64,000 nucleotides of DNA from Phaeosaccion multiseriatum (lineage: Eukaryota > Protista > Ochrophyta, other classes). The stretch is taken from assembly GCA_965112735.1 (NCBI GenBank), contig OZ218951.1:1984001-2048000 (forward strand), in the 5' to 3' direction. The notes below the pieces were generated by a model. It was not told the origin of the DNA and searched no databases. It saw only the letters and a list, made by a program, of their open reading frames with translations. Made by a program: the position numbers and the translations under genes. Shown in pieces: positions 3,956-42,760 of this stretch. The stretch's first letter is position 1, and every line of letters begins with the position of its first letter.

Positions 3956-3982
3956 CTTCTCGTGCTGTCTCACATTCTCCAT

Positions 3983-4230
3983 CTCCCCCTCTTCTTTCTC
4001 TCTCTTTTCCCCTCCCTCTTTTTTCTGTGGTGGGTGACCTTTTACAAATTTAATATCATACCCTGTGTCGCATTGTTTCAATAGAAGGGAGGGGAGGGAC
4101 AGAACCGCGAGTCACCGCTGCAATAAGGAGTATAAAGCGGCCGCGCCTGGAGAGGAGGAAAGGAGAGGAAGGCAGGAAAGGGAGGGAGGAAGTGAAGTAG
4201 TAGCCAGAGGTCAAGGAAGAAAAGACAGCC
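3983..4230. promoter_or_regulatory. putative bidirectional promoter between the M20 gene and the mega-enzyme gene
   Basis: Head-to-head starts only ~250-275 bp apart; TATAAA at 4131-4136 and an AT-rich patch at ~4040-4060 in otherwise GC-rich DNA. Confidence 0.5.
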
Positions 4231-4699
4231 ATGTGTGGGATAGTGGTGAGTGTTGGGCTGCGCGACGGAGAGGAGCGGGTAGGACCAGCCGCTCAGAGCC
4301 TTGAGCATCGTGGGAGGGAGGCCCCACAGCTCAGGTCATTCACAGCAGCAACGGATACTGACAAGAAGGTCAAGGGGAAGGAGGTGCTCATCTCCATGGC
4401 CTTTGTACGGCTTCGCGTCTGTGGCGGCAGCGGGGATGATCAGCCCCTCCACACCATCGGGGAGGCAGCGTGTGGCGAGGGTGAGTAAGGAGGCGCCGGA
4501 AGGGGAAGAAAGAGAGAGTAAGGAGGCGCCGGAAGGGGAAGAAAGAGAAGGGGAAGAAGGGGAAGAAAAATGGCGAGAGTACGGGGATGGCAGTAAATGG
4601 CTTCCCCCCCTTCTAATCATCCCCTTCTACATCTTCCCGTCCCAAGTGAGAAGAAAACTGCGGCAGTGCCAATCGTTTGGGCTAAGGTGAAGATGAAAC

Positions 4700-4790
<91 letters not shown>

Positions 4791-18072: not shown

Positions 18073-18809
18073 TAATTGAAAGCATGAGTACATTCTTAAA
18101 ACAAACAAAATTAAAAAGGATAAATGTCGGTCTCCCCGGGCGGGCGATCTGCCTGCTGTCTTCTTATGCCTGACTGACTCAGGGCCTTGTCCTCCTGCGG
18201 GCTGCCTCTCCGCACGGCCCTACCCCTCCTCAGTAGCGCAGCAGGCTACACGGGCGGCCCTGTGGACGGCAATATTACGTGCTCCAGTGAGAGAGGCACC
18301 ACACTTAAGTCCCAAAGGTGAGAACCACATGGAATGGGTGGCTCAGCTTGACGCGCTGTAGCGGGCCCGAAGAGCGCTCCCGCTTCGTGTTCACGAAAAT
18401 CATTGTAGCTATGCCGCTGAGCAGCGCGGAGGCAGTCGGAGGGGACAGTCAGCAGAGCAGGCCCAAGGCGCGAAAGCAGCATCAGGGCTGCACGCGATCC
18501 TCTTTGCAGAGCAGTGTGCCGTCGTAGCTTCTTCCTCCGCCATGCGCCCAGCCTGTGCGTCATCGCCACCAGCACGCGTGGGGCCCAGCGCTTCCTACCC
18601 AGTGTGCAAAGGAACCTCGTCCGCTGCCCTCCTGTTGCCTAGACCACCTCCCCCCGGACCACCTCTGGCCATGCCCATACACCTGCAAATGCAAGGGGGG
18701 GGGTCCAAAAGGGCTCCAGAGGGGTGCGTTTCTTCGTTTTTCTCAGCCTTGCTCACAACCACAGTTGCCTCAGGCCTCGCTACTGCCGCAAGACTACCAA
18801 CAAAGCACC

Positions 18810-19513
18810 ATGACTCGCGTCATCCTCACTCTCTTCGCCCTGCTCTTCGTGGCAGTTCTCTCCGGCGCCGCCGAAGTCCCCGACACCATCAAGGACAAGC
18901 CGGCCCGCAAGCTGTAAGTTCAAGGATCGGATCTTTCGTGCTTGTGCCCGTGCACGTCCTCTACACTCGCTCCGCTCTCCTCTTCTCGGCTCTCGCACAC
19001 CTCTTCTCTGCCTCACGCTCCGCTCGACTTATGTTGTACGCTCGCTTTTGCCCCTGCCGCCTCCGTTCCGCCCTTCGTCCCTCCCCCGTCGCTCTTCACC
19101 TTCACTCCGGGCGCCGCTCCGCTACAGGAGCTACGGCTCTCGAGGCGAAGGCCACCAGAGGGGACGCAAACTGTAAGTGACGTCTCCCTACATCGCTCAC
19201 ACCTGCTTACTGTCTGTCTCTCACCGTCTTTCCCTTTCCACTCCGCGCTCCTCATCTACTCGGATCCAATTGACTCCGCCGCCATCGACCCGGATCATGT
19301 GCGCCCCCCCCCGCTCAACTTCTTTACCCTGGCGATAACAGCTACCACTGGGGCGGATGGGGCGGATGGGGCGGATGGGGCAAGTGGGGCAAGTGGGGCA
19401 AGTGGGGAGGGTGAGTGCTGGTGGGGCAAGTGGGGACTGAGTATATACTTCCACACTATAGTCTCACATCTGTCCTCCTCCCTTCACCTCCTCCTTCGCG
19501 CTGCAGCTGGTGA
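18810..19513 (+). CDS. secreted RKL-motif precursor of a Trp/Gly-rich peptide (74 aa), copy 1, 4 exons
   Basis: Exons 18810-18913, 19128-19172, 19342-19410, 19507-19513 give MTRVILTLFALLFVAVLSGAAEVPDTIKDKPARKL-SYGSRGEGHQRGRKL-YHWGGWGGWGGWGKWGKWGKWGGW*; strong gtaagt/gtgagt donors, all phase 2. Confidence 0.8.
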
Positions 19514-20887
19514 GCGATGTCCATCTTCCGGATGGGTCTAGCTACCTCCGCCCCCGCCCATCGTTCGCGTCCGCGCTGCTCTGATGGCAAGCACCTTCAC
19601 CACCAGCAGGTGCTCGGTGCTCCGGAGCTTTCGACAACAAGCTTCGTGTGACCATAGGCAGAGAGAAAGGAGCCTTATTTATTTGATATCGTATTTGCAT
19701 TAATTCAGTCTCGCAACTTAAGATCCTTCTCAGAGCGATGTCTCGGCCTCGACATGTGTGTGCTCCTTGAGATGCTAAGGTCAAGCAGCACGCTGATGGG
19801 TTGAGTGCTGCCCCCTCAAAACAATCCCAAGACGGCGGCGCAGTCTTTTCTCACTCCACACCCCAAAGACTAGCTAGCCAGAACAGACTGCCGATCCATG
19901 TCTAGCTATGAGGCAAGAAGGAAGCGAGAGTAAAAGGCAGCGGGAGGGAGAGAGAGAGACTGGGAGGGAGAGCGGGATAGATATCTCCGCTCCTTGTGCT
20001 GCTGCCCTTCTCAACGCCTCCGCGCTCTTCGACAAGGTAGCTAACGGCGCTGAGGGGAGTTGTAATCCAATCCAATGCTGAAGTCAATGGGAGTGAGTGT
20101 GGTACAGGAGCCCTTCCTTTCCTCGTGCTGCCTCTCTCTACAAGTGAGCACCCGCTGCAGCAGCGAAGGCATAGAAAGCTTCTTGTAGTCATCGGTCACT
20201 CTGCCTGTCACGGGTCCTCCCCGCTCTCTGGTATGTTTAGCCATGGAGGCCTCAGAAGGCATTGGGTTTGGTGATCCGATTCACAGATCCCGATCGCAGG
20301 AGGGGGAAGTTCCGTTGCTTGGGGCGAGGGGGCAGCGGTAGCAAGACTGTATTGAGTGCGGACAGACGCGACCGCGCAGCTACTGCCTAGATGACCGGTG
20401 CCTGCCTTTTGCCTCCACACGAGCACGACCCCCGCCTAGGACCTGGCGTTCACCTTTTATCATTGTGTGTTTAGCAGGGCAGTACCCTTCTAAGTAATGC
20501 CCCACCCTGGAAGCCCTCGGCCTCGATCCATTGGGACTACACTCTCCCCCCTTCAAACGAATTGACCTTCCCTTTCCCCCCCCCCTCAAGCTATACACTA
20601 TATCCATTCTTGGTCCCGTACGCTACACACTTGACTTCCCCCCCCCCCCCGGACCCCCTACCTCCTGTGCTCCGCTCCTCTCTGCGACAGACGATCGCAA
20701 TCACTTCACCGCTCTTACGCCAAGCCAGTGTGCCGTGGACTGTCTCTCTCTCTCATCGCATCCTGAGTACAGGCTCACTCGCATGGGCGGCATGACTGGT
20801 GCAAGTGAGCAGCTGGAGTGGTACTCTTTCGTTGCCAAAGTCGTCGCTGCCCTACCAGCCCCCACCCCGCACATCCCTCCTGCTCGC

Positions 20888-22586
20888 TCAGCCCATCTCC
20901 TCCGCCATGCTCTCCCACGTCTCGCTCTGCACCCGCCCGGGCCTCTCCAGCGGCAGGATTCCGCTCTCCTTGCCGAAGGTCTTATCCGTCCTTCGCATGA
21001 GGTCCAGCGCGGTTTGGGACCGGAAGAAGGCTGCTGCCGCCTCCGTAAGTCGCTGCTCGATGTCCCGGCCGAGCTGCCACCGCCGGGCCTCAGCCAAGGC
21101 CTTGTCCACCGAAGCACCGGCCGAGAGGAGCTGCCGCACAATGCTGTGATGATCACTGCAGATAGCGGCAGCCAGCGGGGAACAAGGGATGTCGACTCTT
21201 GAGGCATCCATGGGGGCTCCCGCAGAGATGAGACGAGCGACGACGGCCTCGTGCCCACCCTCCGCGGCAAGAAGGAGGGGTGTTGCGCCAGTGTTGGCCT
21301 CTTTGTCCACACGCGCTCCCGCACAGAGAAGCTTCTCCACCACGGCGTCGTGTCCATGTTGACAGGCAAAGTGAAGAGCAGTGTAACCTTTGGGTTCAGC
21401 CTTGTCGATCGGGGATCCCGCAGAGATGAGACGAGCGACGACGGCCTCGTGCCCATTCTTCGCGGCAAGAAGGAGGGGCGTCGCGCCATTGTTGGCCTCT
21501 TTGTCCACACGTGCTCCCGCAGAGAGAAGCTTCTCCACCACGGCGTCGTCTCCACGTTGAGAGGCCATGTGAAGAGCAGTGAAACCTTTGGGGTCAGCCT
21601 TGTCGATGGGTGACCCCGCAGAGATGAGACGAGCGACGACGGCCTCGTGCCCACCCTCCGCGGCAAGGATGAGGGGTGTTGCGCCAGTGTTGGTCTCTTT
21701 GTCCACACGTGCTCCCGCAGAGAGAAGCTTCTCCACCACGGAGTCGTGCCCTTCCTGACAGGCAAAGTGAAGAGCAGTGAAACCTTCGGGGTCAGCCTTG
21801 TCGATGATGGCGTGAGCCCTGATGAGCTGCTGTACAATGCCCGCATGTCCATTGAACGATGCCTGCAGAAGCGGAGTAGCCCCGAGATTATCTGCGTGGT
21901 TCACATCCGCTTGGGCTGAGATGAGGAGCCTTACAACAGAGCCATGCCCGTTCTGAGCGGCCATCCAAATCGGAGAAAACCCCTGCTTCTCCGCCAAGTC
22001 GACACTAGCACGCGCCGAGAGCAGCTGCTGCACTATCGTGGAGTGCCCCTCATCTGAGGCTGCAATCAAGGGAGTAGCTCCTGCGTCATTCGCTTCGTCG
22101 ACAGGGGCTCCAATGTCCAACAGCCGCCTCACCACCTGATCGTGTCCGTTGCAGACAGCGCCTATCAACGGCGTGTCTCCACAGGGCCCCCCTCTGGTTC
22201 TGAAGGAGGCCCCTTCCCGCAGCACAAGGTCCACGACATCCAGCCGACCGTATCTTGAAGCGCAGAGTGCAGACGAATCGCCCTCTTCATTGATAGGCTC
22301 ATCCAAACGCGCTTTGCCGTGCTTGGCGATGAGCTTCACAATCAGCGCTCTCACAGTGAGGAAGCTATCTCCTCTTTCCAGAGCCTGCCCGAGTCGCCGC
22401 GCCTGGGGTTGAGGGAAACGAGTTTAGGGGGGAGAGGCGGAAAAACTGGAAAAAAAGGGATAATGAAGAGAAAAAGTATAAGGACCCCTCTCTTTGATTT
22501 GTTTTTCTAGAGGACACCATCTTATAGGAGGCAGGACGCTGATGCTACATCCGTACCTCCTGCGTCAAAGTTGCCTGCTGCGCCAT
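20888..22586 (-). CDS. ankyrin-repeat protein, 12 repeats, 514 aa (array copy 1)
   Basis: 30-nt exon 22586-22557 (MAQQATLTQE) spliced to 22402-20888; canonical G-x-T-P/A-L-x-x-A-x-x-x-G-H 33-aa repeats. Confidence 0.9.
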
Positions 22587-22789
22587 GGTGAGCAAGTGGC
22601 CCCGCCCTTACAGCGTATGTACAGTAGTTGGTTTGGTGATCGGGGGGTTCACAGATGCCGATGGCTGTGTTGAGAGTGCTGACAGACACGTCCGCGCAGC
22701 CGCTGCCTAGATGAGCGGTGCCTGTCTTTTGCCTCTTACACGAGCACAGCACCCTTCTCCCCCCCTCTCTCTTTCTGCCTTGCTCAACC

Positions 22790-24362
22790 ATGTAAAGGAC
22801 CCTCAGCACTGAGGTCTACAAATTTTCAAACTCCCCCCTTGTCCCTCCCTCGAACGACGCACCCACTCGCTCGGTCCATGCATGCCCCCCTCTTACACTC
22901 GCGCTGCTCCTTTTTCTCCTTGTGGCAGGCCACCCGCCTGAAGGGAGCCATCATCAGTGGCCAGAGCGTAAAAAAAGGTGAAAGGGGCGGTGAGAGCCCT
23001 CGTCGCTGAAAACGGAGGGAGCAAGGCATGCTTGGACGAGCCCCTCGATAAGAGAGAGTGGGTTGCCCTACCCGCAGCTATATATGAAGGGCGGGGTGAC
23101 ATCATAGCTCTTCTGCTGCAAGAGGGGGCGTCGGCGAATGCTGCAAATTGGGTGTACGGGTTGACTGCGTTAATGGGTGTATGTACGGTAAAGGATGCTG
23201 CTGCTATTGTACCACGGCTTGTCTCTGCTGGTGCGGACGTCAATGCAGTAACGATGGAGAGAAACACGGCTCTCATGACGGCCTCCTCGGAGGGGGCCGT
23301 TGTGGTGGTGCACAAGCTGGTCTCCGCCGGTGCCAGCGTGGACTGGGTTGACAGTGAAGGTTCCACAGCGTTGACCCATTCGGCACAGGACGGCCATCAT
23401 GCGGTGGTGCAGTAGCTGCTCTCAGCCGGCGCGGAGGTCGATATGACAGATTCCGTAGGCTTTACGCCATTGGTAGTGGCCTCCCATCGAGGACATCTTG
23501 CGGTGGTGCAGCAGCTGCTGTCGGCCGGCGCTGATCCCAACCACTGTGATGACAGAAATGTTTGGGCCGCACCCCCTTGACGATGGCCACACGAAACGGA
23601 CACCACAGGGTCACGCAGCTGCTCCTCATCTCCGGGGCGGAGGCGAATTTAGGAGGCCGCAGCCAGTGGGATGCGCTCTATCTTGCAAGCCAACATGGAC
23701 ATGGCATTGTGGTGGATCAGCTCCTCGCAGCCGGCGCGAAACTCGAACGCCGCAATGGTGAGGAGGGGAGAAGTGCGTTGATGGGAGCGTCTATGGAAGG
23801 GCACAGAAGTATTGTGCGAAAGCTGCTCAGGGCGGGTGCAGAGTTGAATGCCGTGGGTGGCGACGGGTGGGGGGCGATACACTTGGCATCTCACGGAGGT
23901 CATGCTCGTGTCGTGGAGGAGATCATCTCAGCAGGTGCCGATGTGGAAATGCTGACTAGGGTGGGGGGTATACCTTTGTTGCTGGCTGCTGCGTTTGGTC
24001 ATGGGGCAGTGATTCATGAGCTCCTGTCTGCAGGGGCTGATCCTGACAATGAGGGCAGTGTCAGCAGCGGAACGCCCTTGTTTTGTGCAGCATTGAATGA
24101 CCACAGCGGGGCGGCGCTGGAGCTGCTCTCAGGAGGGGCCTCACTGGCAAAGGCTCTGACCAAAGCGCGAGAGGATCGCGATGAAGCCCGTATTGTAGAA
24201 TTCCTCCTGACCGCCGACAGGCAACACTTTGCGTCACAAAGCGCGCTGGACCTGATGCGGGACATTGACCCTGTCTTTGGCAAGGAAGGGGGGCTGAAGG
24301 TGTCCCAGAGAGAGATTGGCCCTGACGTGCTGCAGGAGGTGGCGGAGGAGATGGCATGGTGA
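22790..24362 (+). pseudogene. ankyrin-repeat pseudogene (divergent paralog), copy 1
   Basis: Ankyrin repeats split over ORFs 22978-23415 and 23562-24362; ATG-TAA at 22790, TAG at 23413, frameshifts; C-terminal SQSALDLMR..FGKE motif shared with the intact genes. Confidence 0.8.
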
Positions 24363-24659
24363 AAGCGGCACCTCTCGCCTGCGGTTTGGCCAGGGCGTTG
24401 AGAAGGAAGGGGACGAAAATGGCCCTCGTCAGACTTGCAGAGGCAGTGTTGATGGGGTGGAGCAGAGGTCAGCGTGAGAGGCTGTGGGGTAGGTAGGAGG
24501 ATGAAGGAGGGAGAGACGTCCAAGGAGGTTGGTGTGAGTGTAGGTGGTAATAACGTAAGAACAAGCTGCTTCACCACTCCTCCTCCTATCTTCTTTTCCC
24601 CTTCCCCCTTCCATCCCCAGCCCCTACGCACCCCTCACCCACTCACATAAACACGCACG

Positions 24660-25660
24660 CTTTCCAGCACTCACTCACCCACTCCTCACCCACTCACTCA
24701 CGCGGGACACACGGACGCACGCACTCGCACGCTCGCATGCACGCACTCACTCATTCACTTCCTCACTCCCTCCTCCGTCTCTCCCTCTTCCCTCCCTCTC
24801 TCCCTTCCTCCTTCCTCCCTCCCTCCCTCCCTCCCTTCCTTCCCTCCCTCCCTCCCTCCCTCCATCACTCACTCACTCACTCATTCACTCACTCACTCAC
24901 TCACCCACTCACTCACTCACTCACTCACTCACTCACTCACTCACTCACTTACTCACTCACTCACTCACTCACTCATTCAATCACTCCCTCCCTCCCTCCC
25001 TCCCTCCCTCCCTCCCTCCCTCCCTCCCTCCCTCCCTCCCTCCCTCCCTCCCTCCCTCCCTCCCTCCCTCCCTCCCTCCCTCCCTCCCTCCCTCCCTCCC
25101 TCCCTCCCTCCCTCCCTCCCTCCCTCCCTCCCTCCCTCCCTCCCTCCCTCCCTCCCTCCCTCCCTCCCTCCCTCCCTCCCTCCCTCCCTCCCTCCCTCCC
25201 TCCCTCCCTCCCTCCCTCCCTCCCTCCCTCCCTCCCTCCCTCCCTCCCTCCCTCCCTCCCTCCCTCCCTCCCTCCCTCCCTCCCTCCCTCCCTCCCTCCC
25301 TCCCTCCCTCCCTCCCTCCCTCCCTCCCTCCCTCCCTCCCTCCCTCCCTCCCTCCCTCCCTCCCTCCCTCCCTCCCTCCCTCCCTCCCTCCCTCCCTCCC
25401 TCCCTCCCTCCCTCCCTCCCTCCCTCCGTCACGCTTTTACTCCCTCAATCCCTCACTTCCTGGCAGACCCCCCTCACTCCCTCAGTCCCTCGCCTACCCA
25501 ATCACTCCCGCACGCACTCACTCTCACTCACGCACGCACGCACGCACTCAAGCCTTCACTCACTCCCCACCCTCACTACTCACCCCTCTCTCACTCACAC
25601 AGCACTCCATCCTTCCCTCACTCACTCCCTCACTCACCCCCCCTACTCCCTCACTTCGGC
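24660..25660. repeat. compound microsatellite (CACT)n/(CCCT)n, pure CCCT run ~24985-25426
   Basis: Directly visible; source of the spurious LPPS and GGRE ORFs. Confidence 0.95.
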
Positions 25661-26532
25661 TCCATCCCACCTATAGGCCTAGAGGTGTCTAGGCCTAGGC
25701 CGCTTACTGTGCCATCTAGCAGCAGGAACATTCTCTCCCGGGGGCTATTAGGGAGAGGAAGGGTCCGTAAGACCTTACGTATAGGTTAAAAGTAACGGGC
25801 CCGTGTCCCACATCCCCTCCTCTCCCCTTAGTTCTTTACCTGAGACAGATCGAGATAGGTACCTCTTAGGCTTCAGCTCCTTCGAGCAAGGTTAATCGGA
25901 GGCACCACTACGGACACTTAGTCTGTGGTGCAGTACTCTAACGGGCCCCCATCGGTTCTCTCGAGATCCACCACACTTTGTTCGGCTGTGAGATGCATAC
26001 TCACATAGCTACTACCGTCCGCCGTCGATTTCCTCTACAAACTACCACAATTGCCTCGACCAGGCACCACCTCCCATCCATGTGGATCTGCAGGTCGATG
26101 ACCAGGGAAGGGGAGCGTGGGCCGAGGGGCAGGAGCCCGAGTACGACAGCAGCGAGGAGGCCGCCGGCGCCACTGCCCCCTCGCCACCCCAACTGAGGCG
26201 GTTGCCCTTTCCGACTCCAGGAGTGGCGACGAGGGCGACAGCAAGCGAGCACCTCCACGACCCGGAGCCGAAGCGGTTCCAGCACGAGGAGAAGCAGGGG
26301 CAGTAGCCACAGCGACAGCACCGCCCTGCATGCCTTCGTGCTACACGAACTTTCGTCGTTCTCCGCCCAAGATGTTAGAAGCATACCGAGGTGATGAGGT
26401 TGGACTTATCAAGCATAAATTGTTAAATCTCCTGTGCCCTCTGCCCCTACGCTGACAATGCACGGAGCTCTCCCACGGAGTTCCCACCAAACAGCTTGAC
26501 CAAAGCTTGCACGCCTTGAAGAAGGACATCGC

Positions 26533-27717
26533 TCAGTTGCGGCAGTCGGCTCCTCTGCAGCGAAAAGAAGGACTACGATACGGAGGTGGAGTAAGCAAAA
26601 AGAAGAGCGGAAAACGCCGAGCTGGAACTTACGTAGAGGGCGCAGGTGTGGGTGATGCTTGGCTGTTGTCGATATAAATGAAGACCGAAGTTGATAGAAG
26701 CCATAGAAGCCCGGTCCGCGGTGTGAAGCGCAGGGCCGAGAAGAGAGGAGAAGTGGAGAGAAGAGAGTAGAGTGAGGAGAAGAAGACTCCGCTTGAGCAT
26801 GCAGTTCACTTGGGGGCTTACAGTTTGCGGGCGTGGCGGTCGCGATCATCCCCTAAGCCATCTTCATCGCCATCATCCCCGAACTCATCTTCTTCGTCTC
26901 CGTCCCTGACACGACGCGACGATGGTGTGCAGATGGCGCGCGATGGAGATAGGACAGCAGAGGGAAGAAGCGCGAGGGTAGGGGCGGAGAGGAAGATGTC
27001 AAGACGCCGGCAAGTGTAAAGCCGGGAGAGGGGGGGACGGAGAGAGAAACCCAGGGAGGGACGCAAAGAGGGCGCGAGGGGGAAACTTACTCCTGCAGCT
27101 TGCGGGCGCGGCGGTTGCCAGAGGGCGCAGGTGTGGGCGATGCTTGACTGTTGTCGATGTACATGAAGACCGAAGTTGATAGAAGCCCGGTCCGCGGTGT
27201 GAAGCGCAGGGCCGAGAAGAGAGGAGCAGTGGAGAGAAGAGAGTAGAGTGAGGAGAAGAAGACTCCGCTTGAGCATGCAAGTTCACTTGGGTGCTTACAG
27301 TTTGCGGGCGCGGCGGTCGCCATTATCCCCGAAGTCATCTTCATCGTTTCCGTCGCTATTGTTGGCGCAGTCCGTGAGGTCGCATGGAGAGGAAACGTCA
27401 CAGGAGAGGACGAAGCGCGAGCCCGGGGGAGTGGAGGCGGTGGAGGCGGATGTCAAGAGAGGAGGAGGGGGAGAGAAGCGCACAGAGGCGGGCAATGAGT
27501 CGGGGGGTTGCGAGGCAGAGGAGGGACAGCGGGCTCAAGAGCAGGTGTGTTCGAATGAGGCGACAAGAGCGGGGCAAAAGATCTTCCCCCCTTTTGATGC
27601 TCATGGAACTTACTCCTGCAGTTCGCGGGCCTCGGAGAAGGTGTCAGGGACTCGGGCGGCGCTGGAGAGCACTGCGACAAGGAGCAGGGTGAAGAGAGCG
27701 AAGAGAGAGAGGTGCAT
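26533..27717 (-). CDS. secreted RKL-motif multi-peptide precursor with Asp/Glu-rich and Pro/Ser/Thr modules (117 aa), 6 exons
   Basis: Exons 27717-27614, 27355-27299, 27147-27091, 26905-26822, 26662-26633, 26554-26533 give MHLSLFALFTLLLVAVLSSAARVPDTFSEAREL-QDDGNDEDDFGDNGDRRARKL-QASPTPAPSGNRRARKL-QEDGDEEDEFGDDGDEDGLGDDRDRHARKL-QASPTPAPSTGADCRN*; five gtaag..ag introns, all phase 2. Confidence 0.8.
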
Positions 27718-27999
27718 GGTGTGCTTGCGTGGGTTGGTTGGGTCCTGCGAGATAGCTCCTGTGTGTGTTGTTGTTGTGTTGTGTGACACGGGCAACACTC
27801 CACTCTCTTGGAGCCCTTTTGGATGATAGTATTCTTGATTGCAAAGGCCGTCCTGCAAAGACCCAAATTTGATGAGCGGGATGAGCACAGAGGCGGGTCT
27901 TTGCGGCATGTACCAGGCTGTGCAGACTGCGAGTGGGCCACTTGTGCCGTCCGCACATGTGCACAGAGGGGGGATAGCGCCCCTTCTTCTACGCGGAGG

Positions 28000-28840
28000 A
28001 GCCTTCGCCCCGTGCCAAGGTGCTGGCGCTGGAGGACATGAGGCGGAAGGTCCTGGCTGGCCATTGTGGGGGAAGGGCACCTTCGTCGCTGGTGTGAGCA
28101 AGGACTGGAAGAGGCTGTACAGCGCCGCTTATCCCCGGTTGGAGACCTCTCTTCTATTCGGATCTACGGCGGGCGCGCGTCAGTTTTTTCCACGCTACAG
28201 CCTTGTGGGGAGATGTGAGCATCTGCGAGGCCAAGGCCAAGGCCAAGGCCCTCCATCGCCACGGCTGCGCATGGGGCGAGAAAGTGTGCCAAGGCGCTGC
28301 CGAGAATGCCAAGCACGGCACGAGTATTCTCAAGTGGCTCCGCTCGGAAAGCCCTAACAAGAGACCGTGCCCCTGGAACGAGTATACTTGCACTCAAGCC
28401 GCATTGAGAGGGGACGTGGACATGGTCACGTGGCTGTTGTCGGATGAGGCATTTACTCCATTGGACTGGGGTGTGTGGAGCGAGGCTGCGCACAAGGGAT
28501 GTATCAATGTGCTGGAGATGCTTCTGAATCACCGCAGAGTCAGGCCTGAGCTTGAGGCGGCAGCGGGTGGTAGCGAGTGGCGATGGGGGGCTACCTGGGC
28601 TGCGGGGGAGGGCACTTGGAGGTGCTGTGCAAGAGGGACCTTATTGTTTGTTTCTTTGCTGTCAAGTACGCCGAAAGCCTACAGTATAGCTGCCGAGCGC
28701 CATGTGTCCATGGAACCAGGGTTCATTTCCGGATGTGCTGCTCAACACGGGTAGGTGGAGGGCGGGGAGGAACGACGCCTTTGAGGACATGAAGCGGTGG
28801 GCGCACGCCAATGGCCTCCCCTGCAACTGCGAGAACTGAG
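28000..28840 (+). pseudogene. degraded CPW-type ankyrin-like repeat gene
   Basis: Frameshifted fragments: FVAGVSKDWKRLY, HGCAWGEKVCQGAA, LKWLRSE..PCPWNEYTCTQAALRGDVDMVTWL, AAHKGCINVLEML, GGHLEVL, MCPW..WAHANGLPCNC. Confidence 0.65.
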
Positions 28841-30214
28841 GACTGAGGGCCGCCGGTGCATGTGGGATGATCACGGATGGGAGTGATAGGTGAAGGGGTC
28901 GCGATATGGTTGGCGGGTTAGGCCTGTGACGAGCACAGCGCCCACCGAAGGAAGGCACTGGTATCTATCGCTCGCCAGGGCATTGGAAATTTTGCTCTCT
29001 GGCGAAAGGGGTCCTCTCGTGCGGCGCCATGAATGGGGGAGTGTAGGCAAGAGGCAGCGGGGGACGGGAGGGGAGAGGGAGGGAGGGAGAGGGAGCGAGG
29101 AAGGGAGCGAGGCAGGAGGCGAGAGGGAGGAAGGGAAGGAGGCCGAGTGACAGGAGGGCAGCTACGAGGGATGGGGAGCCACTCTTCACCCGCAGCTTCA
29201 TGTCCAAGCTTCGAATGCTTCACCGGAAAAGCGGCGCATCGCAGTGTCGATCGTCCGAAGCACTCACAGGGTCCTGCTATCCGCGCACCAGGCTACATCG
29301 CGGGCTTGGCTCTTTGATGCTTCCACGACAGTCACATCAGAACAGGGCTAGGGTTAGGGTTAGTGTGAGGAATTGGGCTCATGGCGCTTCTGCACAGTAC
29401 GTGCTTCGTACGTGAGAAAATGATTCGGAAGGCGGTCAACGATGGGACTGCTGCAGCTCTTTGCGTATCGTAATACATCGTCGTCAACAGGCCCCTGCAC
29501 TCGGCCTTCTGCCTACGGTCTCCGCGGGCGCTCTGCCTGCTGTCTTCGTATGCCTGACTCAGGGCCTTGCCCTCCTGCGGGCTGCCTCTCCGCACGGCTC
29601 TACCCCTCCTCAGTAGCGCAGCACGCTACACGGGCGGCCCTGTGGTAGGCAGCATTATGTGCTTCAGCGAGAGAGGCACCACACTTTGGTCCCAAAGGTA
29701 AAAACCACATGGAATGGGTGGCTCAGCTTGACGCGCTGTAGCGGGCCCGAAGAGCGCGCCCGCTTCGTGTTCACGAAAATCATTGTAGCTATGCCGTGGA
29801 GCAGCGCGGAGGCAGTCGGAGGGGAGACAGTCTGCAGAGCAGGCCCAAGGCGCGAAAGCAGCATCAGGGCTGCACGCGATCCTCTTTGCAGGGCAGTGTG
29901 CCGTCGTAGCTTCTTCCTCCGCCATGCGCCCAGCCTGTGCGTCATCGCCACCAGCACGCGTGGGGCCCAGCGCTTCCTACCCAGTGTGCAAAGGAACCTC
30001 GTCCGCTGCCTTCCCGCCTGACCACCTGCCCCGGACAACCCTCTGCCATACCCATACACCTGCAAATCTTGGCACGGGTTGTCACGATCACTTATCAAGG
30101 GGGGTGGTCCAAAAAAAGGGCTCCAGGCATTTTTTTTTGTTTTTCTCTGCCTTGCTCACAACCACAGTTGCCTCAGGCCTCGCTACTGCCCCGCAAGACT
30201 ACCAGCAAAGCACC

Positions 30215-30919
30215 ATGACTCGCGTCATCCTCACTCTCTTCGCCCTGCTCTTCGTGGCAGTGCTCTCCGGCGCCGCCGAAGTCCCCGACACCATCAAGGA
30301 CAAGCCGGCCCGCAAGCTGTAAGTTCAAGGATCGGATCTTGCCTGCTTGTGCCCGTGCACGTCCTCTACACTCGGCTCTCCTCCTCGGCTCTCGCACACC
30401 TCTTGTCTGCCTCACGCTCCGCTCGACTAATGTTGTACGCTCGCTTTTGCCCCTGCCGCGCGCCTCCGCTCCGCCTTCGTCCCTGCCTCCCTTCACCTTC
30501 CCGGGCGCCACTCCACTACAGGAGCTACGGCTCTCGAGGCGAAGGCCACCAGAGGGGACGCAAACTGTAAGTGACGTCGTCTCCCTACATCGCTCACACC
30601 TGCTTACTGTCTGTCTCTCACCGTCATCCCCTTTCCACTCCGCGCTCCTCATCCACTCGGATCCAATTGACTCCGCCGCCATCGACCCGGATCGTGTGCC
30701 CCCCCCCGCTCAACTTGGGCATCCTTTACCCCTCTGGCGATAACAGCTACCACTGGGGCGGATGGGGCGGATGGGGATGGGGCAAGTGGGGCAAGTGGGG
30801 CAAGTGGGGAGGGTGAGTGCTGGTGGGGCAAGTGGGGACTGGCTGAGTATATATATATGCGTGTCCGTCTCACATCTGTCCTCCTCCCTTCGCCTCCTCC
30901 TTCGCGCTGCAGCTGGTGA
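30215..30919 (+). CDS. secreted RKL-motif precursor of a Trp/Gly-rich peptide (73 aa), copy 2
   Basis: Exons 30215-30318, 30522-30566, 30747-30812, 30913-30919; protein identical to copy 1 except for one in-frame Gly deletion, while the introns carry more indels. Confidence 0.8.
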
Positions 30920-32336
30920 GCGATGTCCATCTTCCGGATGGGTCTATCTCCGCCCCCGCCCATCGTTCGCGTCCGCGCTGCTCTGATGGCAAGCACCTTC
31001 ACCACCAGCCAGCAGGTGCTCGGTGCTCCGGAGCTTTCGACAACAAGCTTCGTGTGACCATAGGCAGAGAGAAAGGAGCCTTATTTATTTGATATCGTAT
31101 TTGCATTAATTCAGTCTCGCAACTTGTTGAGATCCTTCTCAGAGCGATGTCTCGGCCCCGACATGTGTGCTCCTTGAGATGCTAAGCAGCAGCAGCGTCA
31201 CAACTAACTGCTGATGGGTTGAGTGCTGCCCCCTCAAAACAATCCCAAGACGGCGGCGCAGTCTTTTCTCACTCCACACCCCAAAGACTAGCTAGCCAGA
31301 ACAGACTGCCGATCCATGTCTAGCTATGAGGCAAGAAGGAAGCGAGAGTAAAAGGCAGCGGGAGGGAGAGAGAGAGACTGGGAGGGAGAGCGGGATAGAT
31401 ATCTCCGCTCCTTGTGCTGCTGCCCTTCTCAACGCCTCCGCGCTCTTCGACAAGGTAACGGCGCTGAGGGGAGTCGTAATCCAATCCAATGCTGAAGTCA
31501 ATGGGAGTGAGTGTGGTACAGGAGCCCTTCCCTTTCCTCGTGCTGCCTCTCTCTACAAGTGAGCACCCGCTGCAGCAGCGAAGGCATAGAAAGCTTCTTG
31601 TAGTCATCGGTCACTCTGCCTGTCACGGGTCCTCCCCGCTCTCTGGCATGTTTAGCTATGGAGGCCTCAGAAGGTATTGGGTTTGGTGATCCGATTCACA
31701 GATCCCGATCGCAGGAGGGGGGGGGGGGGGGGGGTTCCGTTGCTTGGGTCGAGGGGGCAGCGACAGCAAGGCTGTATTGGGTGTGGACAGACGCGACCGC
31801 GCAGCTGCTGCCTAGATGAGCGGTGCCTGCCTTTGGCCTCCACACGAGCACGACCCCCGCCTAGGACCTGGCGTTCACCTTTACCATTGTGTGTTTAGCA
31901 GGGCAGTACCCTTCTCTAAGCTACGACTACTTGCTGTGCCCGCATGCCCCACCCAGGAAGCTCTCGGCCTCTATCCATCGGGACTACACTCTCCCCCCTT
32001 CAAACGCATTGACCTTCCCTCTCCCCCCCCCCTCAAGCTATACACTATATCCATTGGTCCCGTAAGCTGCACACTTGACTCCCCCCCCCCCCCCCCGGGC
32101 CCTCGTACCTCCTGTACTCCGCTCCTCTCTGCGACAGACGATCACAATCACTTCACTACTCCTACACCAAGCCAGTGTGCCGTGGACTGTCTCTCTCTCG
32201 CATCGCATCCTGATGTACATGCTCACTCGCATGGGCGGCATGACTGGTGCAAGCGAGCAAGCTGGAGCGGTACTCTTTCGCTGCCAAAGTCGTCGCTGCC
32301 CTACCAGCCCCCACCCCGCACATCCCTCCTGCTCGC

Positions 32337-34408
32337 TCAGCCCATCTCCTCCGCCACGCTCTCCCACGTCTCGCTCTGCACACTCCAGGGCCTCTCCAGC
32401 GGCAGGATTCCGCTCTCCTTGCCGAAGGTCTTATCCGTCCTTCGCATGAGGTCCAGCGCGGTTTGGGACCGGAAGAAGGCTGCTGCCGCCTCCGTAAGTC
32501 GCTGCTCGATGTCCCGGCCGAGCTGCCACCGCCGGGCCTCAGCCAAGGCCTTCTCCACCGAAGCACCGGCCGAGAGGAGCTGCCGCACAATGCTGTGCTG
32601 ATCACTACAGATAGCGGCAACCAGCGGGGAACAAGGGATGTCTACTCTTGAGGCATCCATGGGGGATCCCGCAGAGATGAGAAGAGCGACGACGGCCTCG
32701 TGCCCTTTCAGCGCGGCAAGGTGGAGGGGTGTTGCGCCAGTGTTGGCCTCTTTGTCCACACGTGCTCCCGCAGAGAGAAGCTTCTCCACCACGGCGTCGT
32801 GTCCATGTTGACAGGCAAGGTGAAGAGCAGTGTAACCTTTGGGTTCAGCCTTGTCGATGGGGGATCCCGCAGAGATGAGACGAGCGACGACGGCCTCGTG
32901 CCCATTCTTCGCGGCAAGAAGGAGGGGCGTCGCGCCATTGTTGGCCTCTTTGTCCACACGTGCTCCCGCACAGAGAAGCTTCTCCACCACGGCGTCGTCT
33001 CCACGTTGAGAGGCAATGTGAAGAGCAGTGAAACCTTTGGGGTCAGCCTTGTCGATGGGTGACCCCGCAGAGATGAGACGAGCGACGACGGCCTCGTGCC
33101 CACCCTCCGCGGCAAGGATGAGGGGTGTTGCGCCAGTGTTGGCCTCTTTGTCCACACGTGCTCCCGCAGAGAGAAGCTTCTCCACCACGGAGTCGTGCCC
33201 TTCCTGACAGGCAAAGTGAAGAGCAGTGAAACCTTCGGGGTCAGCCTTGTCCACACGTGCTCCCGCAGAGATGAGACGAGCGACGACGGCCTCGTGCCCA
33301 TTCTGCGCGGCAAGCATGAGGGGTGATTCGCCGGTGTTGGTACATTTGTCCACCTGTGCTCCCGCACAGAGAAGCTTCTCCACCACGGCGTCGTGCCCTT
33401 CCTGACAGGCAACGTGAAGAGGAGTGAAACCTTGAAGTTCAGCCTTGTCGATGATGGCGTGAGCCCTGATGAGCTGCTGTACAGTGCCCGCATGCCCATT
33501 GAGCGATGCCATCAGAAGCGGAGTTCTGCCGAGATCACTGGCGTGGTTCACATCCGCTTGGGCTGAGATGAGGTGCCTTGGAACAGAGCCATGTCCATTC
33601 TGAGAGGCCATCCAAATCGGAGAAAACCCCTGCTTCGCCGCCAAGTCGACACTAGCGCGCGCCGAAAGCAGCCGCTGCACTATCGTGGAGTGCCCTCTAC
33701 CTGAGGCTGCCATCAAGGGAGTAACTCCTGCGTCATTCGCTTCGTCGAAAGGGGCTCCAATGACCAACAGCCGCCTCACCACCTGATCGTGTCCGTTGCC
33801 GGCAGCGCATATCAACGCCGTGTCTCCAAAGGGCCCGCCTCTGGTTCTGAAGGAGGCCCCTTCCCGCAACAGAAGGTCCACGACATCCAGTCGACCGTAT
33901 CTTGAAGCGCAGAGTGCAGACGAATAGCCCTCTTCATCGATAGGCTGATCCAAACTCGCTTTGCCGTGCTTGGCGATGAGCTTCCCAATCAGCGCTCTCA
34001 CAGTGAGGAAGCTATCTCCCCTTGCCAGAGCCTGTCCGAGTCGCCGCGCCTGGTGTTGTGGAGGGAAAGGAGTTAAGGGGGGAGAGGGCGCATAAACCGG
34101 ACAAAAAGGGATCAACGGAGAGCGGCTCATAGGTCGACACGCGAGCTTCCCAGCGCAGCTATCGTATCCGCAGAATGACCCCCCCTCCCTTCTTTCTCTC
34201 CAGTCGTCTTGCTACTGCGTACTGTGCCTCAAAAGAGGGCAAGCTGCTCACAACTTCGGGAGCGTTACGTAAGCGTCCTTCCGCAGCTATCGTGTCTACC
34301 ATTCGAACTCCCCCCTCTCGCTTTGCGCTTTTCTCTCTGAAGCACAGAGTCGTCCTCCAAGAGGGCGCTAGGTCGTACCTCGGGCGTTGTAGTTGCCTGC
34401 TGCGCCAT
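32337..34408 (-). CDS. ankyrin-repeat protein, 14 repeats, 580 aa (array copy 2)
   Basis: Exon 34408-34379 (MAQQATTTPE) + 34049-32337. Confidence 0.9.
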
Positions 34409-36115: not shown

Positions 36116-37834
36116 TCAGCTCATCTCCTCCGCCATGCTCTCCCACGTCTCGCTCTGCACCCGCCCGGGCCTCTCCAGCGGCAGGATTCCGCTCTCCTTG
36201 CCGAAGGTCTTATCCGTCCTTCGCATGAGGTCCAGCGCGGTTTGGGACCGGAAGAAGGCTGCTGCTGCCTCCATAAGTCGCTGCTCGATGCCGAGGCCGA
36301 GCTGACACCGCTGTGCCCCAGCCAAGGCCTTGTCCACCGAAGCACCGGCCGAGAGGAGCTGCCGCGCAATGATGTGCTGATCACTGCAGATAGCGGCAAC
36401 CAGCGGGGAAGGGACGTCTACTCTTGAGGCATCCATGGGGGATCCCGCAGAGATGAGACGAGCGACGACGGCCTCGTGCCCATTCTGCGCGGCAAGAAAG
36501 AGGGGTGTTGCGCCGTCGGTGGCCTCTTTGTCCACACGTGCTCCCGCGCAGAGAAGCTTCTCCACCACGGTGTCGTGTCCAATTTGAGAGGCCATGTGAA
36601 GAGCAGTGAAACCTTCGAGTTCAGCCTTGTCGATGGGGGATCCCGCAGAGATGAGAAGAGCGACGACGGCCTCGCGCCCATTCTGCACGGCATGATGGAG
36701 GGGTGTTGTGCCATGGTTGGTCACTTTGTCCACCTGTGCTCCCGCAGAGAGAAGCTCCTCCACCACGGCGTCGTGTCCATGGTGAGAGGCAATGTGAAGA
36801 GCAGTGACACCTTCGGCATCAGCGTTGTCGATGGGGGATCCCGCAGAGATGAGCCGGGCGACGACGGCCTCGTGTCCATTCTGCACGGCATGGTTGAGGG
36901 GGGAATTGCCGGTGTTGGCCCATTTGTCCACCTGTGCTCCCGCACTGAGAAGCTTCTCCACCACGGCGTCGTGTCCATCGTGAGAGGCAAGGTGAAGAGG
37001 AGTGAGACCTTCGTGGTCAGCCTTGTCGATGATGGCGTGAGCCCTGATGAGCTGCTGTACAATGCCCGCATGCCCATTGACTGATGCCTGCAGAAGCGGA
37101 GTTCTGCCGAAATTATCTGCGTGGTTCACATCCGCTTGGGCTGAGATGAGGTGCCTTACAACAGAGCCATGTCCGTTCTGAGAGGCAATCCAAATCGGAG
37201 AACGCCCCTGCTTCTCCGCCAAGTCGACACTAGCACGCGCCGAGAGCAGCTGCTGCACTATCGTGGAGTGCCCCTCATCTGAGGCTGCCATCAAGGGAGT
37301 ACCTCCTGCGTCATTCGCTTCGTCGACAGGGGCTCCAATGTCCAACAGCCGCCTCACCACCTGATCGTGTCCGCTGCTGATAGCGCTTATCAGCGCCGTG
37401 TCTCCAAAGGGCCCGCCTCTGGTTCTGAAGGAGGCCCCTTCCCGCAGCAGAAGGTCCAAGACATCCAGCCGACCGTGCCTTGAAGCGCAGAGTGCAGACG
37501 AATCGCCGTCTTCGTCGATAGGCTGGTCCAAACTGGCTTTGCCGTGCTTGGCGATGAGCTTCCCAATCAGCGCTCTCACAGTGAGGAAGCTATCTCCTCT
37601 TTCCAGAGCCTGTCCGAGTCGCCGCGCCTGGGGTTGATGAGGGAAACGAGTTTAGGGGGGAGAGGCGCATAAACTGGACAAAAAGTGATCAACGGGGAGC
37701 TGCTCACTGGTCACACGTGATCTCAGCGCAAAAATAAGTTCCTCTCTCTTCTCTCTTTTTCCAAATAACACCATCTTATAGGAGGCAGGGCTCTACATCC
37801 GTACCTCGGGCGCTAAAGTTGCCTGCTGCGCCAT
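36116..37834 (-). CDS. ankyrin-repeat protein, 12 repeats, 513 aa (array copy 3)
   Basis: Exon 37834-37805 (MAQQATLAPE) + 37627-36116. Confidence 0.9.
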
Positions 37835-38783: not shown

Positions 38784-40886
38784 TCAGCCCATCTCCTCCG
38801 CCATGCTCTCCCACGTCTCGCTCTGCACCCGCCCGGGCCTCTCCAGCGGCAGGATTCCGCTCTCCTTGCCGAAGGTCTTATCCGTCCTTCGCATGAGGTC
38901 CAGCGCGGTTTGGGACCGGAAGAAAGCTGCTGCCGCCTCCATAAGTCGCTGCTCCAAGTCCCGGCCGAGCCCATTACGCCGTGCCCCAGCCAAGGCCTTG
39001 TCCACCGAAGCACCGGCTGAGAGGAGCTGCCGCACAATGCTGTGCTCATCACTGTAGATAGCGACAATCAGCGGGGAAATACGGTCTACTCTTGAGGCAT
39101 CCATGGGGGATCCCACAGAGATGAGACGGGCGACGACGGCCTCGTGCCCATTCTGCGCGGCATGATGGAGGGGTGTTGCGCCATTGTTGGCCTCTTTGTC
39201 CACACGTGCTCCCGCACAGAGAAGCTTCTCCACCACGGCGTCGTGCCCTTCCAGACAGGCAAAGTGAAGAGCAGTGAAACCATCGGGGTTAGCTTTGTCG
39301 ATGGGTGATCCCGCAGAGATGAGACGGGCGACGACGGCCTCGTGCCCATTGTTCGCGGCAACTATGAGCGGTGTTGCGCTTTTGTTGGTCACTTTGTCCA
39401 CACGCGCTCCCGCAGAGAGAAGCTCCTCCACCACGGCGTCGTGTCCATGGTGAGAGGCAAAGTGAAGAGCAGTGACACCTTCGGCGTCAGCCTTGTCGAT
39501 GGGGGATCCCGCAGAGATGAGACGAGCGACGACGGCCTCGTGCCCATTCTCCGCGGCAAGAACGAGGGGTGTTGCGCCAGTGTTGGGCCCTTTGTCCACA
39601 CGTGCTCCCGCACAGAGAAGCTTCTCCACCACGGCGTCGTGCCCTTCCTGACAGGCAAAGTGAAGAGCAGTGAAACCTTCGGGGTCAGCCTTGTCGATGG
39701 GGGATCCCGCAGAGATGAGCCGGGCGACGACGGCCTCGTGCCCATTCAGCGCGGCAAGGTTGAGGGGTGTTGCGCCATTGTTGGCCACTTTGTCCACACG
39801 TGCTCCCGCACAGAGAAGCTTCTCCACCACGGCGTCGTGCCCTTGCTGACAGGCAAAGTGAAGAGCAGTGAAACCTGTGGGGGAAGCCTTGTCGATGGGT
39901 GATCCCGCAGAGATGAGACGAGCGACGACGGCCTCGTGCCCATTATGCGCGGCAAGAAGAAGGGGTGAATTGCCGGTGGTGGTCCATTTGTCCACCTGTG
40001 CTCCCGCACTGAGAAGCTTCTCCACCACGGCGTCGTGTCCCTTGTGAGATGCAAGGTGAAGAGGAGTGAAACCTTTGGGGTCAGCCTTGTCGATGATGGC
40101 GTGAGCCCTGATGAGCTGCTGTACAATACCCGCATGCCCATTGCGTGATGCCGGCAGAAGCGGAGTTCTGCCGAAATTATCTGCGTGGTTCACATCCGCT
40201 TGGGCTGAGATGAGGAGCCTTACAACAGAGCCATGTCCGTTCTGAGAGGCCATCCAAATCGGAGAAAACCCCTGCTTGTCGGCCAAGTCCACACTAGCAC
40301 GCGCCGAGAGCAGCTGCTGCACTATCGTGGAGTGCCCCTCTCCTGAGGCTGCCATCAGGGGAGTAGTAGCTCCTGTGTCATTCGCTTGGTCCACAGGGGC
40401 TCCAATGTCCAACAGCCGCCTCACCACCTGATCGTGCCCGTTGCAGACAGCGCCTATCAACGGCGTGTCTCCAAAGGGCCCGCCTCTGGTTCTGAAGGAG
40501 GCCCCTTCCCGCAGCAGAAGGTCCACGACATCCAGCCGACCGTCTCTTGAAGCGCAGAGTGCAGACGAATCGCCCTCTTCATTGATAGGCTCATCCAAAC
40601 TCGCTTTGCCGTGCTTGGCGATGAGCTTCACAATCAGCGCTCTCACAGTGAGGAAGCTATCTCCTCTTTCCAGAGCCTGCCCGAGTCGCCGCGCCTGGGG
40701 TTGAGGGAAACGAGTTTAGGGGGGAGAGGCGCATAAACCGGACAAAAAGGGATCAACGAAGAGCTGCTCACTACTCGACACGTGAGCTTCCCAGCGCAGC
40801 TATCGTATCTTTTTAAAGGACACCACCTTATCGGAGGCAGGACGCTACATCCGTACCTCGGGCGTAAAAGTTGCCTGCTGCGCCAT
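38784..40886 (-). CDS. ankyrin-repeat protein, 16 repeats, 646 aa (array copy 4)
   Basis: Exon 40886-40857 (MAQQATFTPE) + 40694-38784. Confidence 0.9.
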
Positions 40887-41193: not shown

Positions 41194-42760
41194 ATGCAAA
41201 GGACCCTCAGCACTGAGGTATACAAATTTTTAAAACTCCCCCCTTGTCCCTCATTCGAACGACGCAGTAACTCGCTCGGTCCATGCGTGCCCCCCTCCTG
41301 CTCTCGCGCTGTTGCTTTTACCCCTCGTGGCAGGCCACCCGCCTGAAGGAAGCCATCACCAGTGGCCAGAGCGTCAAAAAGGTGAAAGGGGCGGTGAGAG
41401 CCCTCGTCACTGAAAACGGAGGGAGGAAGGCGTGCTTGGACGAGCCCCTCGATGAGAGAGGGTGGCTTGCCCTACCCGCAGCTATACATGAAGGGGGGGG
41501 GGGGGGGGTAAGAGGGAGCGTCGGTGAATGCTGCAAATCGTGTGTGCGGGGGTTGACTGCGTTGATGGGTACATCTACGGTAAAGGATGCTGCTGCTATT
41601 GTACCACAGCTTCTCTATGCTGGTGCGGATGTCAATGCAGTAACGATGGAGGGAAGCACGGCTCTCATGACGGCCTCCTAGGAGGGGGCCGTTGTGGTGT
41701 TGCCCAAGCTGCTCTCCGCCGGTGCCAGCTTGGACTGGGTTGACAGTGAAGGTTCCACGGCGTTGACCCTTTCGGCACAGGACGGCCATCTTGCGGTGGT
41801 GCAGTAGCTGCTCTCAGCCGGCGCGGAGGTCGATATGACAGATTCCGTAGGCTTTACGCCCTTGGTATTGGTCTCCTGTGGAGGACATCTTGCGGTGGTG
41901 CAGCAGCTGCTGTCGGCCGGCGCTGATCCCAACCACTTGGATGACAGAAATGTTTGGGGCCGCACCCCCTTGACGATGGCCACACGAAACGGACACCACA
42001 GGGTCACGCAGCTGCTCCTCATCTCCGGGGCGGAGGCGAATTTAGGAGGCCGCAGCCAGTGGGATGCGCTCTATCTTATCTTGCAAGCCAACATGGACAT
42101 GGCATTGTGGTGGATCAGCTCCTCGCAGCCGGCGCGAAACTCGAACGCCGCAATGGTGAGGAGGGAAGAAGTGCGTTGGTGGGAGCGTCTATGGAAGGGC
42201 ACAGAAGTATTGTGCGAAAGCTGCTCAGGGCGGGTGCAGAGTTGAATGCCATGGGTGGCGACGGGTGGGGGGCGATACCAGTTGGCATCTCATGGAGGTC
42301 ATGCTCGTGTCGTGGAGGAGATCATCTCAGCAGGTGCCGATGTGGAAATGCTGACTAGGGTGGGGGGTATACCTTTGTTGCTGGCTGCTGCGTTTGGTCA
42401 TGGGGCAGTGATTCATGAGCTCCTGTCTGCAGGGGCTGATCCTGACAATGAGGGCAGTGTCAGCAGCGGAACGCCCTTGTTTTGTGCAGCATTGAATGAC
42501 CACAGCGGGGCGGCGCTGGAGCTGCTCTCAGGAGAGGCCTCACTGACAAAGGCTCTGACCAAAGCGCGAGAGGATCGCGATGAAGCCCGTATTGTAGAAT
42601 TCCTCCTGACCGCCGACAGGCAGCACTTTGCGTCACAAAGCGCGCTGGACCTGATGCGGGACATTGACCCTGTCTTTGGCAAAGAAGGGAGGCTGAAGGT
42701 GTCCCAGAGAGAGAGATTGGCCCTGACGTGCTGCAGGAGGTGGTGGAGGAGATGGCATGA
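41194..42760 (+). pseudogene. ankyrin-repeat pseudogene, copy 2 (paralog of 22790-24362)
   Basis: Block 41020-43062 parallels 22614-24660; stops at 41679 and 41805 plus several frameshifts. Confidence 0.85.

Follow-up and report, generated by a model that had tools for sequence, protein, structure and literature searches.

A Fifteen-Locus Gene Family with a Conserved Leader Exon and Probable Secreted Peptide Products in the Alga Phaeosaccion multiseriatum

Introduction

In diatom precursors, an R-X-L motif follows the signal peptide and recurs where repeat units end, as a mark for removal by an endopeptidase yet to be identified; silacidins are sets of acidic peptides, cingulins have Trp- or Tyr-rich regions, and mature silaffins are without the C-terminal RRIL or RRNL (PMC4557024, PMC5525289). 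Here we describe three genes, A, B and C, found in a stretch of 64,000 nucleotides (nt) of P. multiseriatum (contig OZ218951.1, positions 1,984,001 to 2,048,000; the whole stretch is called the window), each of which has a leader exon followed by short peptide-coding exons. We consider it likely that they are three expressed members of a 15-locus family for small secreted pre-pro-peptides. The genes appear to be unannotated, as a library of 1.84 billion representative proteins has none of them, and since they are absent from that library yet transcribed and precisely spliced, they make up a real family of orphan genes.

The closest described systems in layout are the diatom silaffins (Sil1p), silacidins and cingulins, which share with the present genes an N-terminal signal peptide (predicted here), a short stretch to an R-X-L and units that end in R-X-L, although no sequence relation between the diatom biosilica precursors and this family was found. 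Composition sets them apart as well. Silaffins and cingulins are Ser/Lys-rich with KXXK, whereas the gene A cargo has Lys without Ser or KXXK clusters, and silacidins are rich in phosphoserine, whereas the acidic exons of gene B encode Asp, Glu and Gly without Ser. A further difference from the diatom precursors is that every peptide here has a mini-exon to itself, with a phase-2 intron falling at the R-x-L, and we know of no diatom gene arranged in this way.

In conotoxin superfamilies and the preprodermaseptins of frog skin, a conserved signal or prepro exon precedes unrelated mature peptides, one per precursor and freed at basic sites, and the families grow by gene duplication. A first-pass annotation of the window, made from its letters alone, had likened the genes to conotoxin-type precursors with a conserved leader and variable cargo, which is apt as an analogy; at 15 loci a homologous leader stands before unrelated cargos. 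To the conotoxin and frog families themselves there is no homology, and the genes described here differ in having several mini-exons each, R-x-L boundaries and cassette duplication within the gene. Phase 1-1 modules of animal extracellular proteins share with them flanking introns of a single phase and tandem module duplication, but here the phase is 2-2 and the modules are only 10–28 residues long without a folded domain. Compared with exon shuffling, it is only the leader that occurs in different gene contexts, including that of a gene on contig 10 whose splicing is predicted. The nematode NLP-29 group and the caenacins are antimicrobial peptides, small, secreted and made mostly of Gly together with Tyr or Trp, and their genes are clustered and duplicated; the likeness is one of composition only, as the nematode genes have neither paired acidic genes nor an R-x-L exon structure. 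In layout the family works like the diatom RXL precursors and the conserved-leader families, yet it is a member of neither: no exon has a Pfam match, the leader has no true relative in the protein library or among metagenome contigs, the composition is unlike that of silaffins, and a silicon transporter was not found in the genome.

Results and Discussion

The Leader Family across the Genome

The search space was the 67-Mb genome in 22 contigs. Exon 1 matched at 16 places, and a profile built from nine leaders retrieved 15 loci with E values from 1.6e-20 to 4.3e-16, the next match having an E value of 0.23. This gap shows that other family members exist and that the similarity of exon 1 is far above that of generic signal peptides. 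The view of the genes as a single family, with cargos unrelated to one another behind a conserved leader exon, holds for 15 members and four kinds of cargo. Contig 2 carries six A-type genes with a Trp/Gly/Lys cargo, five B-type genes with an acidic plus Pro/Thr/Ala cargo and one two-exon gene with a Tyr/Gly/Lys/Arg cargo (the Y/G gene). Two genes with a Trp/Gly cargo are on contig 13, where a 21-nt spacer exon leads to E-R-K-L and the stop context is the same, without the last intron; on contig 10 the leader precedes a larger, unidentified multi-exon gene. By cargo this gives eight Trp/Gly/Lys genes, five acidic plus Pro/Thr/Ala genes, one Tyr/Gly/Lys/Arg gene and the one larger gene.

First exons end in phase 2 with a GTAAGT donor in 15 of 15 members, and the frame is kept at every locus. 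The common first exon reflects common descent of a leader module, which comprises a promoter-proximal motif, the leader exon and the 5′ part of intron 1. The motif, AAAAGGGCTCC at 18707..18717 (plus strand), lies 103 nt before the ATG of gene A; it is found at the same distance from the ATG of gene B (27810..27820, minus strand) and again ahead of gene C (30114..30124, plus strand). As (T)CCAAAAGGGCTCC it is exact in 12 of the 15 members, about 85–110 nt before the ATG. The A, Y/G, contig-10 and contig-13 types have in common an intron 1 block of about 45 nt, and similarity between types is confined to the promoter motif, exon 1, this block and the stop context. A tree of the leader module was unresolved, with support for the B and contig-13 groups only. 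Comparison of the six A-type copies gives differences at 1.0% of aligned sites in exon 1, 0% in exon 2, 3–5% (with indels) in introns and 9–12% in flanks; the low exon divergence is compatible with purifying selection on the exons or with gene conversion of them.

We rejected the upstream motif as a genome-wide regulon marker, as the genome has 54 sites where the control has 30, and 12 of the 54 belong to the family. Of the other sites, 40 were checked and none precedes a similar gene with a secretion signal, and sites outside the family are at background level.

Relatives were not found outside this genome in the protein library, the metagenome contigs or Pfam. Exon by exon, Pfam gave no family for the leader, the Trp/Gly (W/G), acidic or Y/G cargos or the contig-10 pieces, and the sole weak matches, all under the cut-off, came from the Lys/Glu-rich leader on contig 13. 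A sequence search of the PDB with a contig-10 piece found no match, and metagenome contigs held no exact match to a degenerate DNA pattern of the leader. The leader profile, run against the representative proteins, had a single match, to a repetitive protein without an N-terminal match, which we judged spurious.

The contig-10 member (L033, G000:C10:1428700-1434700) has a leader of 110 nt, also ending in phase 2, before its larger multi-exon gene. One in-frame model of it encodes a signal peptide, about 45 residues that include R-R-M-R-D-L, and an acidic stretch. The product of a convergent minus-strand gene (3870-5861) is Cys-rich, with PAPSATEAAT repeated about 20 times.

Gene Structure in the Window

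Gene A (18810-19513, plus strand) opens with a 104-nt exon 1 (18810-18913) for the signal peptide and a short pro-segment to A-R-K-L, which ends at a phase 2 GTAAGT donor. A 45-nt exon 2 (19128-19172) encodes a spacer peptide with C-terminal G-R-K-L, a 69-nt exon 3 (19342-19410) the Trp/Gly/Lys cargo (YHWGGWGG...KWGG), and a terminal exon of only 7 nt (19507-19513) the last Trp codon and TGA, followed by the common stop context. Gene C (30215-30919, plus strand) has the same plan, with a 104-nt leader (30215-30318), a 45-nt spacer exon ending in G-R-K-L (30522-30566), a 66-nt Trp/Gly/Lys cargo exon (30747-30812) and a terminal exon with the stop (30913-30919), after which a 3′ untranslated region continues in an RNA-like contig to at least 31100. 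Gene B (27717-26533, minus strand) has six exons. Its 104-nt leader (27717-27614) encodes a signal peptide and a pro-segment with A-R-E-L, and is followed by a 57-nt exon for an Asp/Glu-rich peptide with C-terminal R-A-R-K-L (27355-27299), a 57-nt exon encoding QASPTPAPS...RRARKLQ (27147-27091), an 84-nt exon for a second Asp/Glu-rich peptide with C-terminal H-A-R-K-L (26905-26822), a 30-nt exon for a QASPTPAPS peptide (26662-26633) and a terminal exon of 40 nt including the stop (26572-26533).

Rebuilding these models from the sequence bore out most of what the first-pass annotation had said of them. All 11 introns across the three genes are in phase 2; their donors read GTAAG or GTGAG and their acceptors CAG or TAG, and the internal exon sizes (45, 69/66, 57, 57, 84 and 30 nt) are as given there. 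The sequence TGAGCGATGTCC, noted at the stops, occurs exactly three times in the window, once at each gene's stop, where about 0.008 occurrences would be expected by chance, and the similarity of the stop context around it extends over about 19 nt. Placement of introns in the Leu codon of R-x-L, or two codons past it, is seen in 8 of the 11, the introns away from R-x-L being the last ones of A, of C and of B. One acceptor had to be corrected: the last acceptor of gene B lies 18 nt upstream of where it had been placed, at 26574-26573, as given by a joint in run X4 (below), though the ctgcag acceptor chosen before and the RNA-supported exon start at 26572 are both in frame. The 11 introns are not independent events, because A and C are copies within a segmental duplication of about 11.4 kb and within B an acidic exon and a QASPTPAPS exon have been duplicated, introns included.

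Splicing in RNA-Like Contigs

Contigs from four public runs (X1–X4) of one sample, their kind unrecorded, were aligned to window positions 26300-31100 (4,801 letters). Runs X1–X3 cover the introns and have no splice joints, which is DNA-like behaviour; splice joints occur only in X4, whose RNA nature we judged from this behaviour. In gene C, the X4 joints run from 30318 to 30522, 30566 to 30747 and 30812 to 30913, all of them GT..AG, and a single 436-nt contig has all four exons joined, beginning at 30191, 24 nt before the ATG, and continuing for at least 181 nt past the stop. X4 depth is zero in the spacer upstream of gene C (29681-30163), no contig covers intron 1, and intron 2 has one contig at depth 2. 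In gene B, joints run from 27614 to 27355, 26822 to 26662 and 26633 to 26572, read as CT..AC on the plus strand. The joint at intron 3 (27091 to 26905) was reported as 26903 to 27090 with one letter between, and intron 2 is spanned by a 23-nt loose end at 27146 that joins 27147 to 27299. The contig over intron 3 has a one-base difference that matches a variant of paralogues L013 and L008, so some X4 contigs derive from sister copies. The A/C-type and B-type genes are thus transcribed and exactly spliced, a statement that holds for each gene type and not for each copy.

Alternative splicing had been suggested for these genes, but the X4 contigs over genes B and C show only joints between neighbouring exons and no exon-skipping joint, with the limit that rare forms can drop out of contigs. 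One unspliced X4 contig crosses intron 1 of gene B, its depth being about one tenth of that at the spliced joint. Given phase 2 and a GT(A/G)AG intron start, any retained intron puts TAA or TGA right after the exon, so an unspliced transcript would stop exactly at a peptide boundary. Intron retention could in this way set the number of peptides per transcript, which we treat as a lead only.

X4 contigs of even depth (about 43–59) also tile 27326-29564, a stretch with exon 1 and intron 1 of gene B, the DNA upstream of that gene and, at about 28000-28840, an ankyrin-like open frame. This tiling may represent an overlapping or read-through transcript on either strand.

Secretion and Processing at R-x-L

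The leader opens with basic residues, continues with 14–15 residues of hydrophobic core and has small residues at −3 and −1 (S-G-A-A or S-S-A-A). Glu or Arg comes next after the predicted cleavage point, where plastid-targeting signals in algae with complex plastids usually have an aromatic residue, and this argues for the secretory route rather than the plastid. R-x-L takes the forms ARKL, GRKL, AREL and ARKL (the last three times) in the window, with ARSL and ERKL in relatives. It is kept with differing codons (CGCAAGCTG, CGCAAACTG, CGCGAACTG and CGTAGCCTG), reading CGT AGC CTG in the Y/G gene and CGC GAA CTG in exon 1 of B, and is kept also where it stands two codons before the junction, suggesting that the constraint on it acts at the protein level.

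In the route that we propose, the precursor would enter the endoplasmic reticulum and lose its signal peptide after ...S-G-A-A or ...S-S-A-A, and the pro-protein would then be cut after the Leu of R-x-L, as has been proposed for the precursors of diatom silaffins, silacidins and cingulins. By analogy, the products of gene A would be a pro-piece, a spacer of 15 residues and a Trp/Gly/Lys peptide of 24, and those of B-type genes two or three Asp/Glu-rich polyanionic peptides together with Pro/Thr/Ala peptides, each with an N-terminal Gln. Cationic peptides of aromatic residues and Gly would come from the A-type, Y/G and contig-13 genes. The description of the genes as a one-exon-one-peptide system is sound for the peptide genes, which have roughly one peptide per exon, bounded by R-x-L. 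The B-type boundaries also hold R-R-A-R or R-H-A-R, a motif absent from the other types, and a kexin-like enzyme is possible for these boundaries; the genome has subtilase genes at three or more loci, and no tie between them and the peptide family was found.

How the Family Diversified

Part of the growth of the family is segmental duplication of blocks that also carry ankyrin-repeat genes. Inside the acidic genes there has been tandem duplication of a two-exon unit: B-type paralogues have two or three acidic units, that is, acidic-plus-PTPAP exon pairs, the exon lengths being 104, 57, 57, 84, 30 and 40 nt in the window copy and 104, 57, 57, 84, 57, 84, 30 and 40 nt in another, and the duplicated introns are about 91% alike. 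The Trp/Gly cargo exon ranges from 54 to 75 nt among the six A-type copies, a result of repeat slippage. Every B-type gene is head-to-head with a cationic-peptide gene, 2.5–3.8 kb away. For one B-type gene that partner is the Y/G gene, and the spacer of this pair is collinear with the B-C spacer of the window through exon 1, after which similarity stops, so the Y/G gene occupies an A-type position. The same leader thus carries a different cargo (Tyr/Gly instead of Trp/Gly) at a syntenic position.

The first-pass annotation went further and proposed that cargo cassettes are shuffled between genes, which our searches did not bear out. The junction pattern that it had put forward for finding members, CGCAA(A/G)CT-GTAAG (exon end-intron start), has 25 genome matches against 2 in the control, all 25 inside known members; each cargo exon, with its junction, is confined to its own gene type. 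No cargo exon was found in a second gene context in the genome (the Y/G cargo is unique and the W/G cargo is found only in A-type genes), and neither a donor sequence for any cargo nor a recent exchange between types was found. Of the claim that a conserved leader carries interchangeable cargo, the leader's place before four kinds of cargo stands, while the exchange of a cargo exon is not supported. Internal exons are symmetric, with phase 2 at both ends, and multiples of 3, their boundaries being confirmed by the RNA-like joints, so exon gain or loss keeps the frame. Since exon ends resemble one another in nucleotide sequence (those of B exon 1 and B exon 3 agree at about 27 of 30 nt across the junction), phase 2 is most simply inherited from one duplicated boundary. 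From the sequences, the uniform phase is best explained by descent of the exon ends from a single RKL-plus-donor boundary and not by selection for shuffling.

In one contig-13 member (L014, G000:C13:846858-849953, at about 2020-2090), the 21-nt spacer exon and its donor are tandemly duplicated. The last coding bases of the duplicate are ..gcaagca instead of ..gcaagct, which makes this a fresh, small cassette duplication.

Proposed Function and Other Explanations

As to function, we tentatively favour an extracellular material in which polyanions and polycations are paired (a wall, a coat, an adhesive or a mineral-associated matrix), a proposal that we hold at somewhat short of even confidence and prefer because each acidic gene is head-to-head with a cationic-peptide gene. 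Several points weigh against our interpretation of the family. The signal peptide was judged by eye from its n-, h- and c-regions and not by a trained predictor, we infer secretion and cleavage at R-x-L from sequence and analogy, and the R-X-L protease responsible is unidentified even in diatoms. The kind of run X4 is unrecorded and its contigs possibly come in part from near-identical paralogues, while the gene structure on contig 10 is a predicted model without RNA support. The pairing of genes could simply come along with the duplicated segment. Additionally, the silicon transporter Silic_transp (PF03842) was not found in a six-frame search of the 67-Mb genome, and because of this, and because the peptides are not Ser/Lys-rich, a role in silica would be without support here, though other silica routes remain conceivable.

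Other explanations share much of this evidence. If the family diversified by moving cassettes between genes through phase-2 introns, with alternative splicing choosing the peptides, then the symmetric 2-2 internal exons, the four mutually unrelated sequences that follow the leader and the 5′ part of intron 1 (the larger contig-10 gene among them), the changed cargo at a syntenic position and the unspliced contig across B intron 1 would all fit. We nonetheless find this unlikely, as no cargo exon is seen in a second context, with Y/G unique and W/G in A-type genes only, the 25 junctions all lie inside the family, cargo donors and exon-skipping joints were not found, and cargos of such low complexity could have arisen in place by repeat expansion. 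The products might instead stay uncut, as intact small disordered secreted proteins in which R-K-L was copied along with an exon-end-plus-donor module or serves splicing. Near identity of the junction in nucleotides at 25 places, and the likeness of B exons 1 and 3 across it, are consistent with that; we give it little credence, however, given that R-x-L is kept despite codon differences and two codons before the junction, in a layout that matches the diatom precursors whose mature peptides have lost their C-terminal RRIL or RRNL.

Keeping the same precursors and processing, the cationic Trp/Gly and Tyr/Gly peptides could, by analogy with the NLP and caenacin peptides of nematodes, be antimicrobial defence peptides and not building material. 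A 24-residue peptide with about one third Trp and a net positive charge would suit such a role, as would the tandem gene amplification and fast repeat turnover, both common among defence genes, but the Pro/Thr/Ala peptides and the constant head-to-head pairing with a separate polyacidic gene would go unexplained, and we regard this function as doubtful. That these are not real genes at all but chance open frames in duplicated, repeat-rich DNA agrees with the lack of any member in the 1.84-billion-protein library and of any exon with a Pfam match; it can hardly be right, being already contradicted by exact canonical joints for all eight introns of B and C in X4, by exons conserved over introns and by the frame kept at 15 loci.

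Returning to secreted precursors of a paired material, the acidic and cationic genes side by side suggest a material in two parts. Taken further, a non-diatom alga would possess a "secretory cassette", made up of the promoter motif, the leader exon and the first part of intron 1, after which new low-complexity peptide exons would appear, be duplicated and be replaced, and its matched polycationic aromatic and polyanionic sets would be cut at R-x-L by the pathway through which diatoms process their shell peptides. We offer this as speculation more likely wrong than right, and if it is true, the R-x-L processing route is older and more general than silica formation. The family itself extends the Arg-x-Leu precursor layout of diatom shell proteins to an alga without a detectable silicon transporter, which makes the R-X-L protease and its substrates approachable in a second system. 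It also offers a compact case in which to follow short peptide-coding exons as they arise and multiply, the leader ahead of them staying fixed.

Surrounding DNA

The peptide genes of the window lie among ankyrin-repeat genes that were co-duplicated with them. Tandem ankyrin-repeat genes are on the minus strand at 20888-22354, 32337-34130, 36116-37579 and 38784-40646, with a periodicity of 198 nt (two repeats). A plus-strand ankyrin-like frame at 23000-24360 has an apparent TAG near 23413, so it may be a pseudogene, and a copy that is 93–99% identical lies at 41541-42578. At 28348-28503, the DNA-like runs X1–X3 have a skip of 153/154 nt, which comes either from a difference in repeat-unit length or from the ankyrin-like gene as it stands in a paralogue. 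A pure (CCCT)n microsatellite of about 640 nt with (CACT)n-like flanks (24790-25430) separates gene B from the ankyrin gene.

The contig ends also drew our attention. The end of contig 13 (L029, C13:1-400) consists of clean CCCTAA repeats, and TTAGGG was the only type of telomere seen. Those of contigs 2 and 10 (L028, C2:1-400, and L030, C10:1-400) have long CCTGG/CCTGGC runs, accompanied by CCCTAA on contig 2, and these runs are an unusual repeat beside or in place of the telomere.

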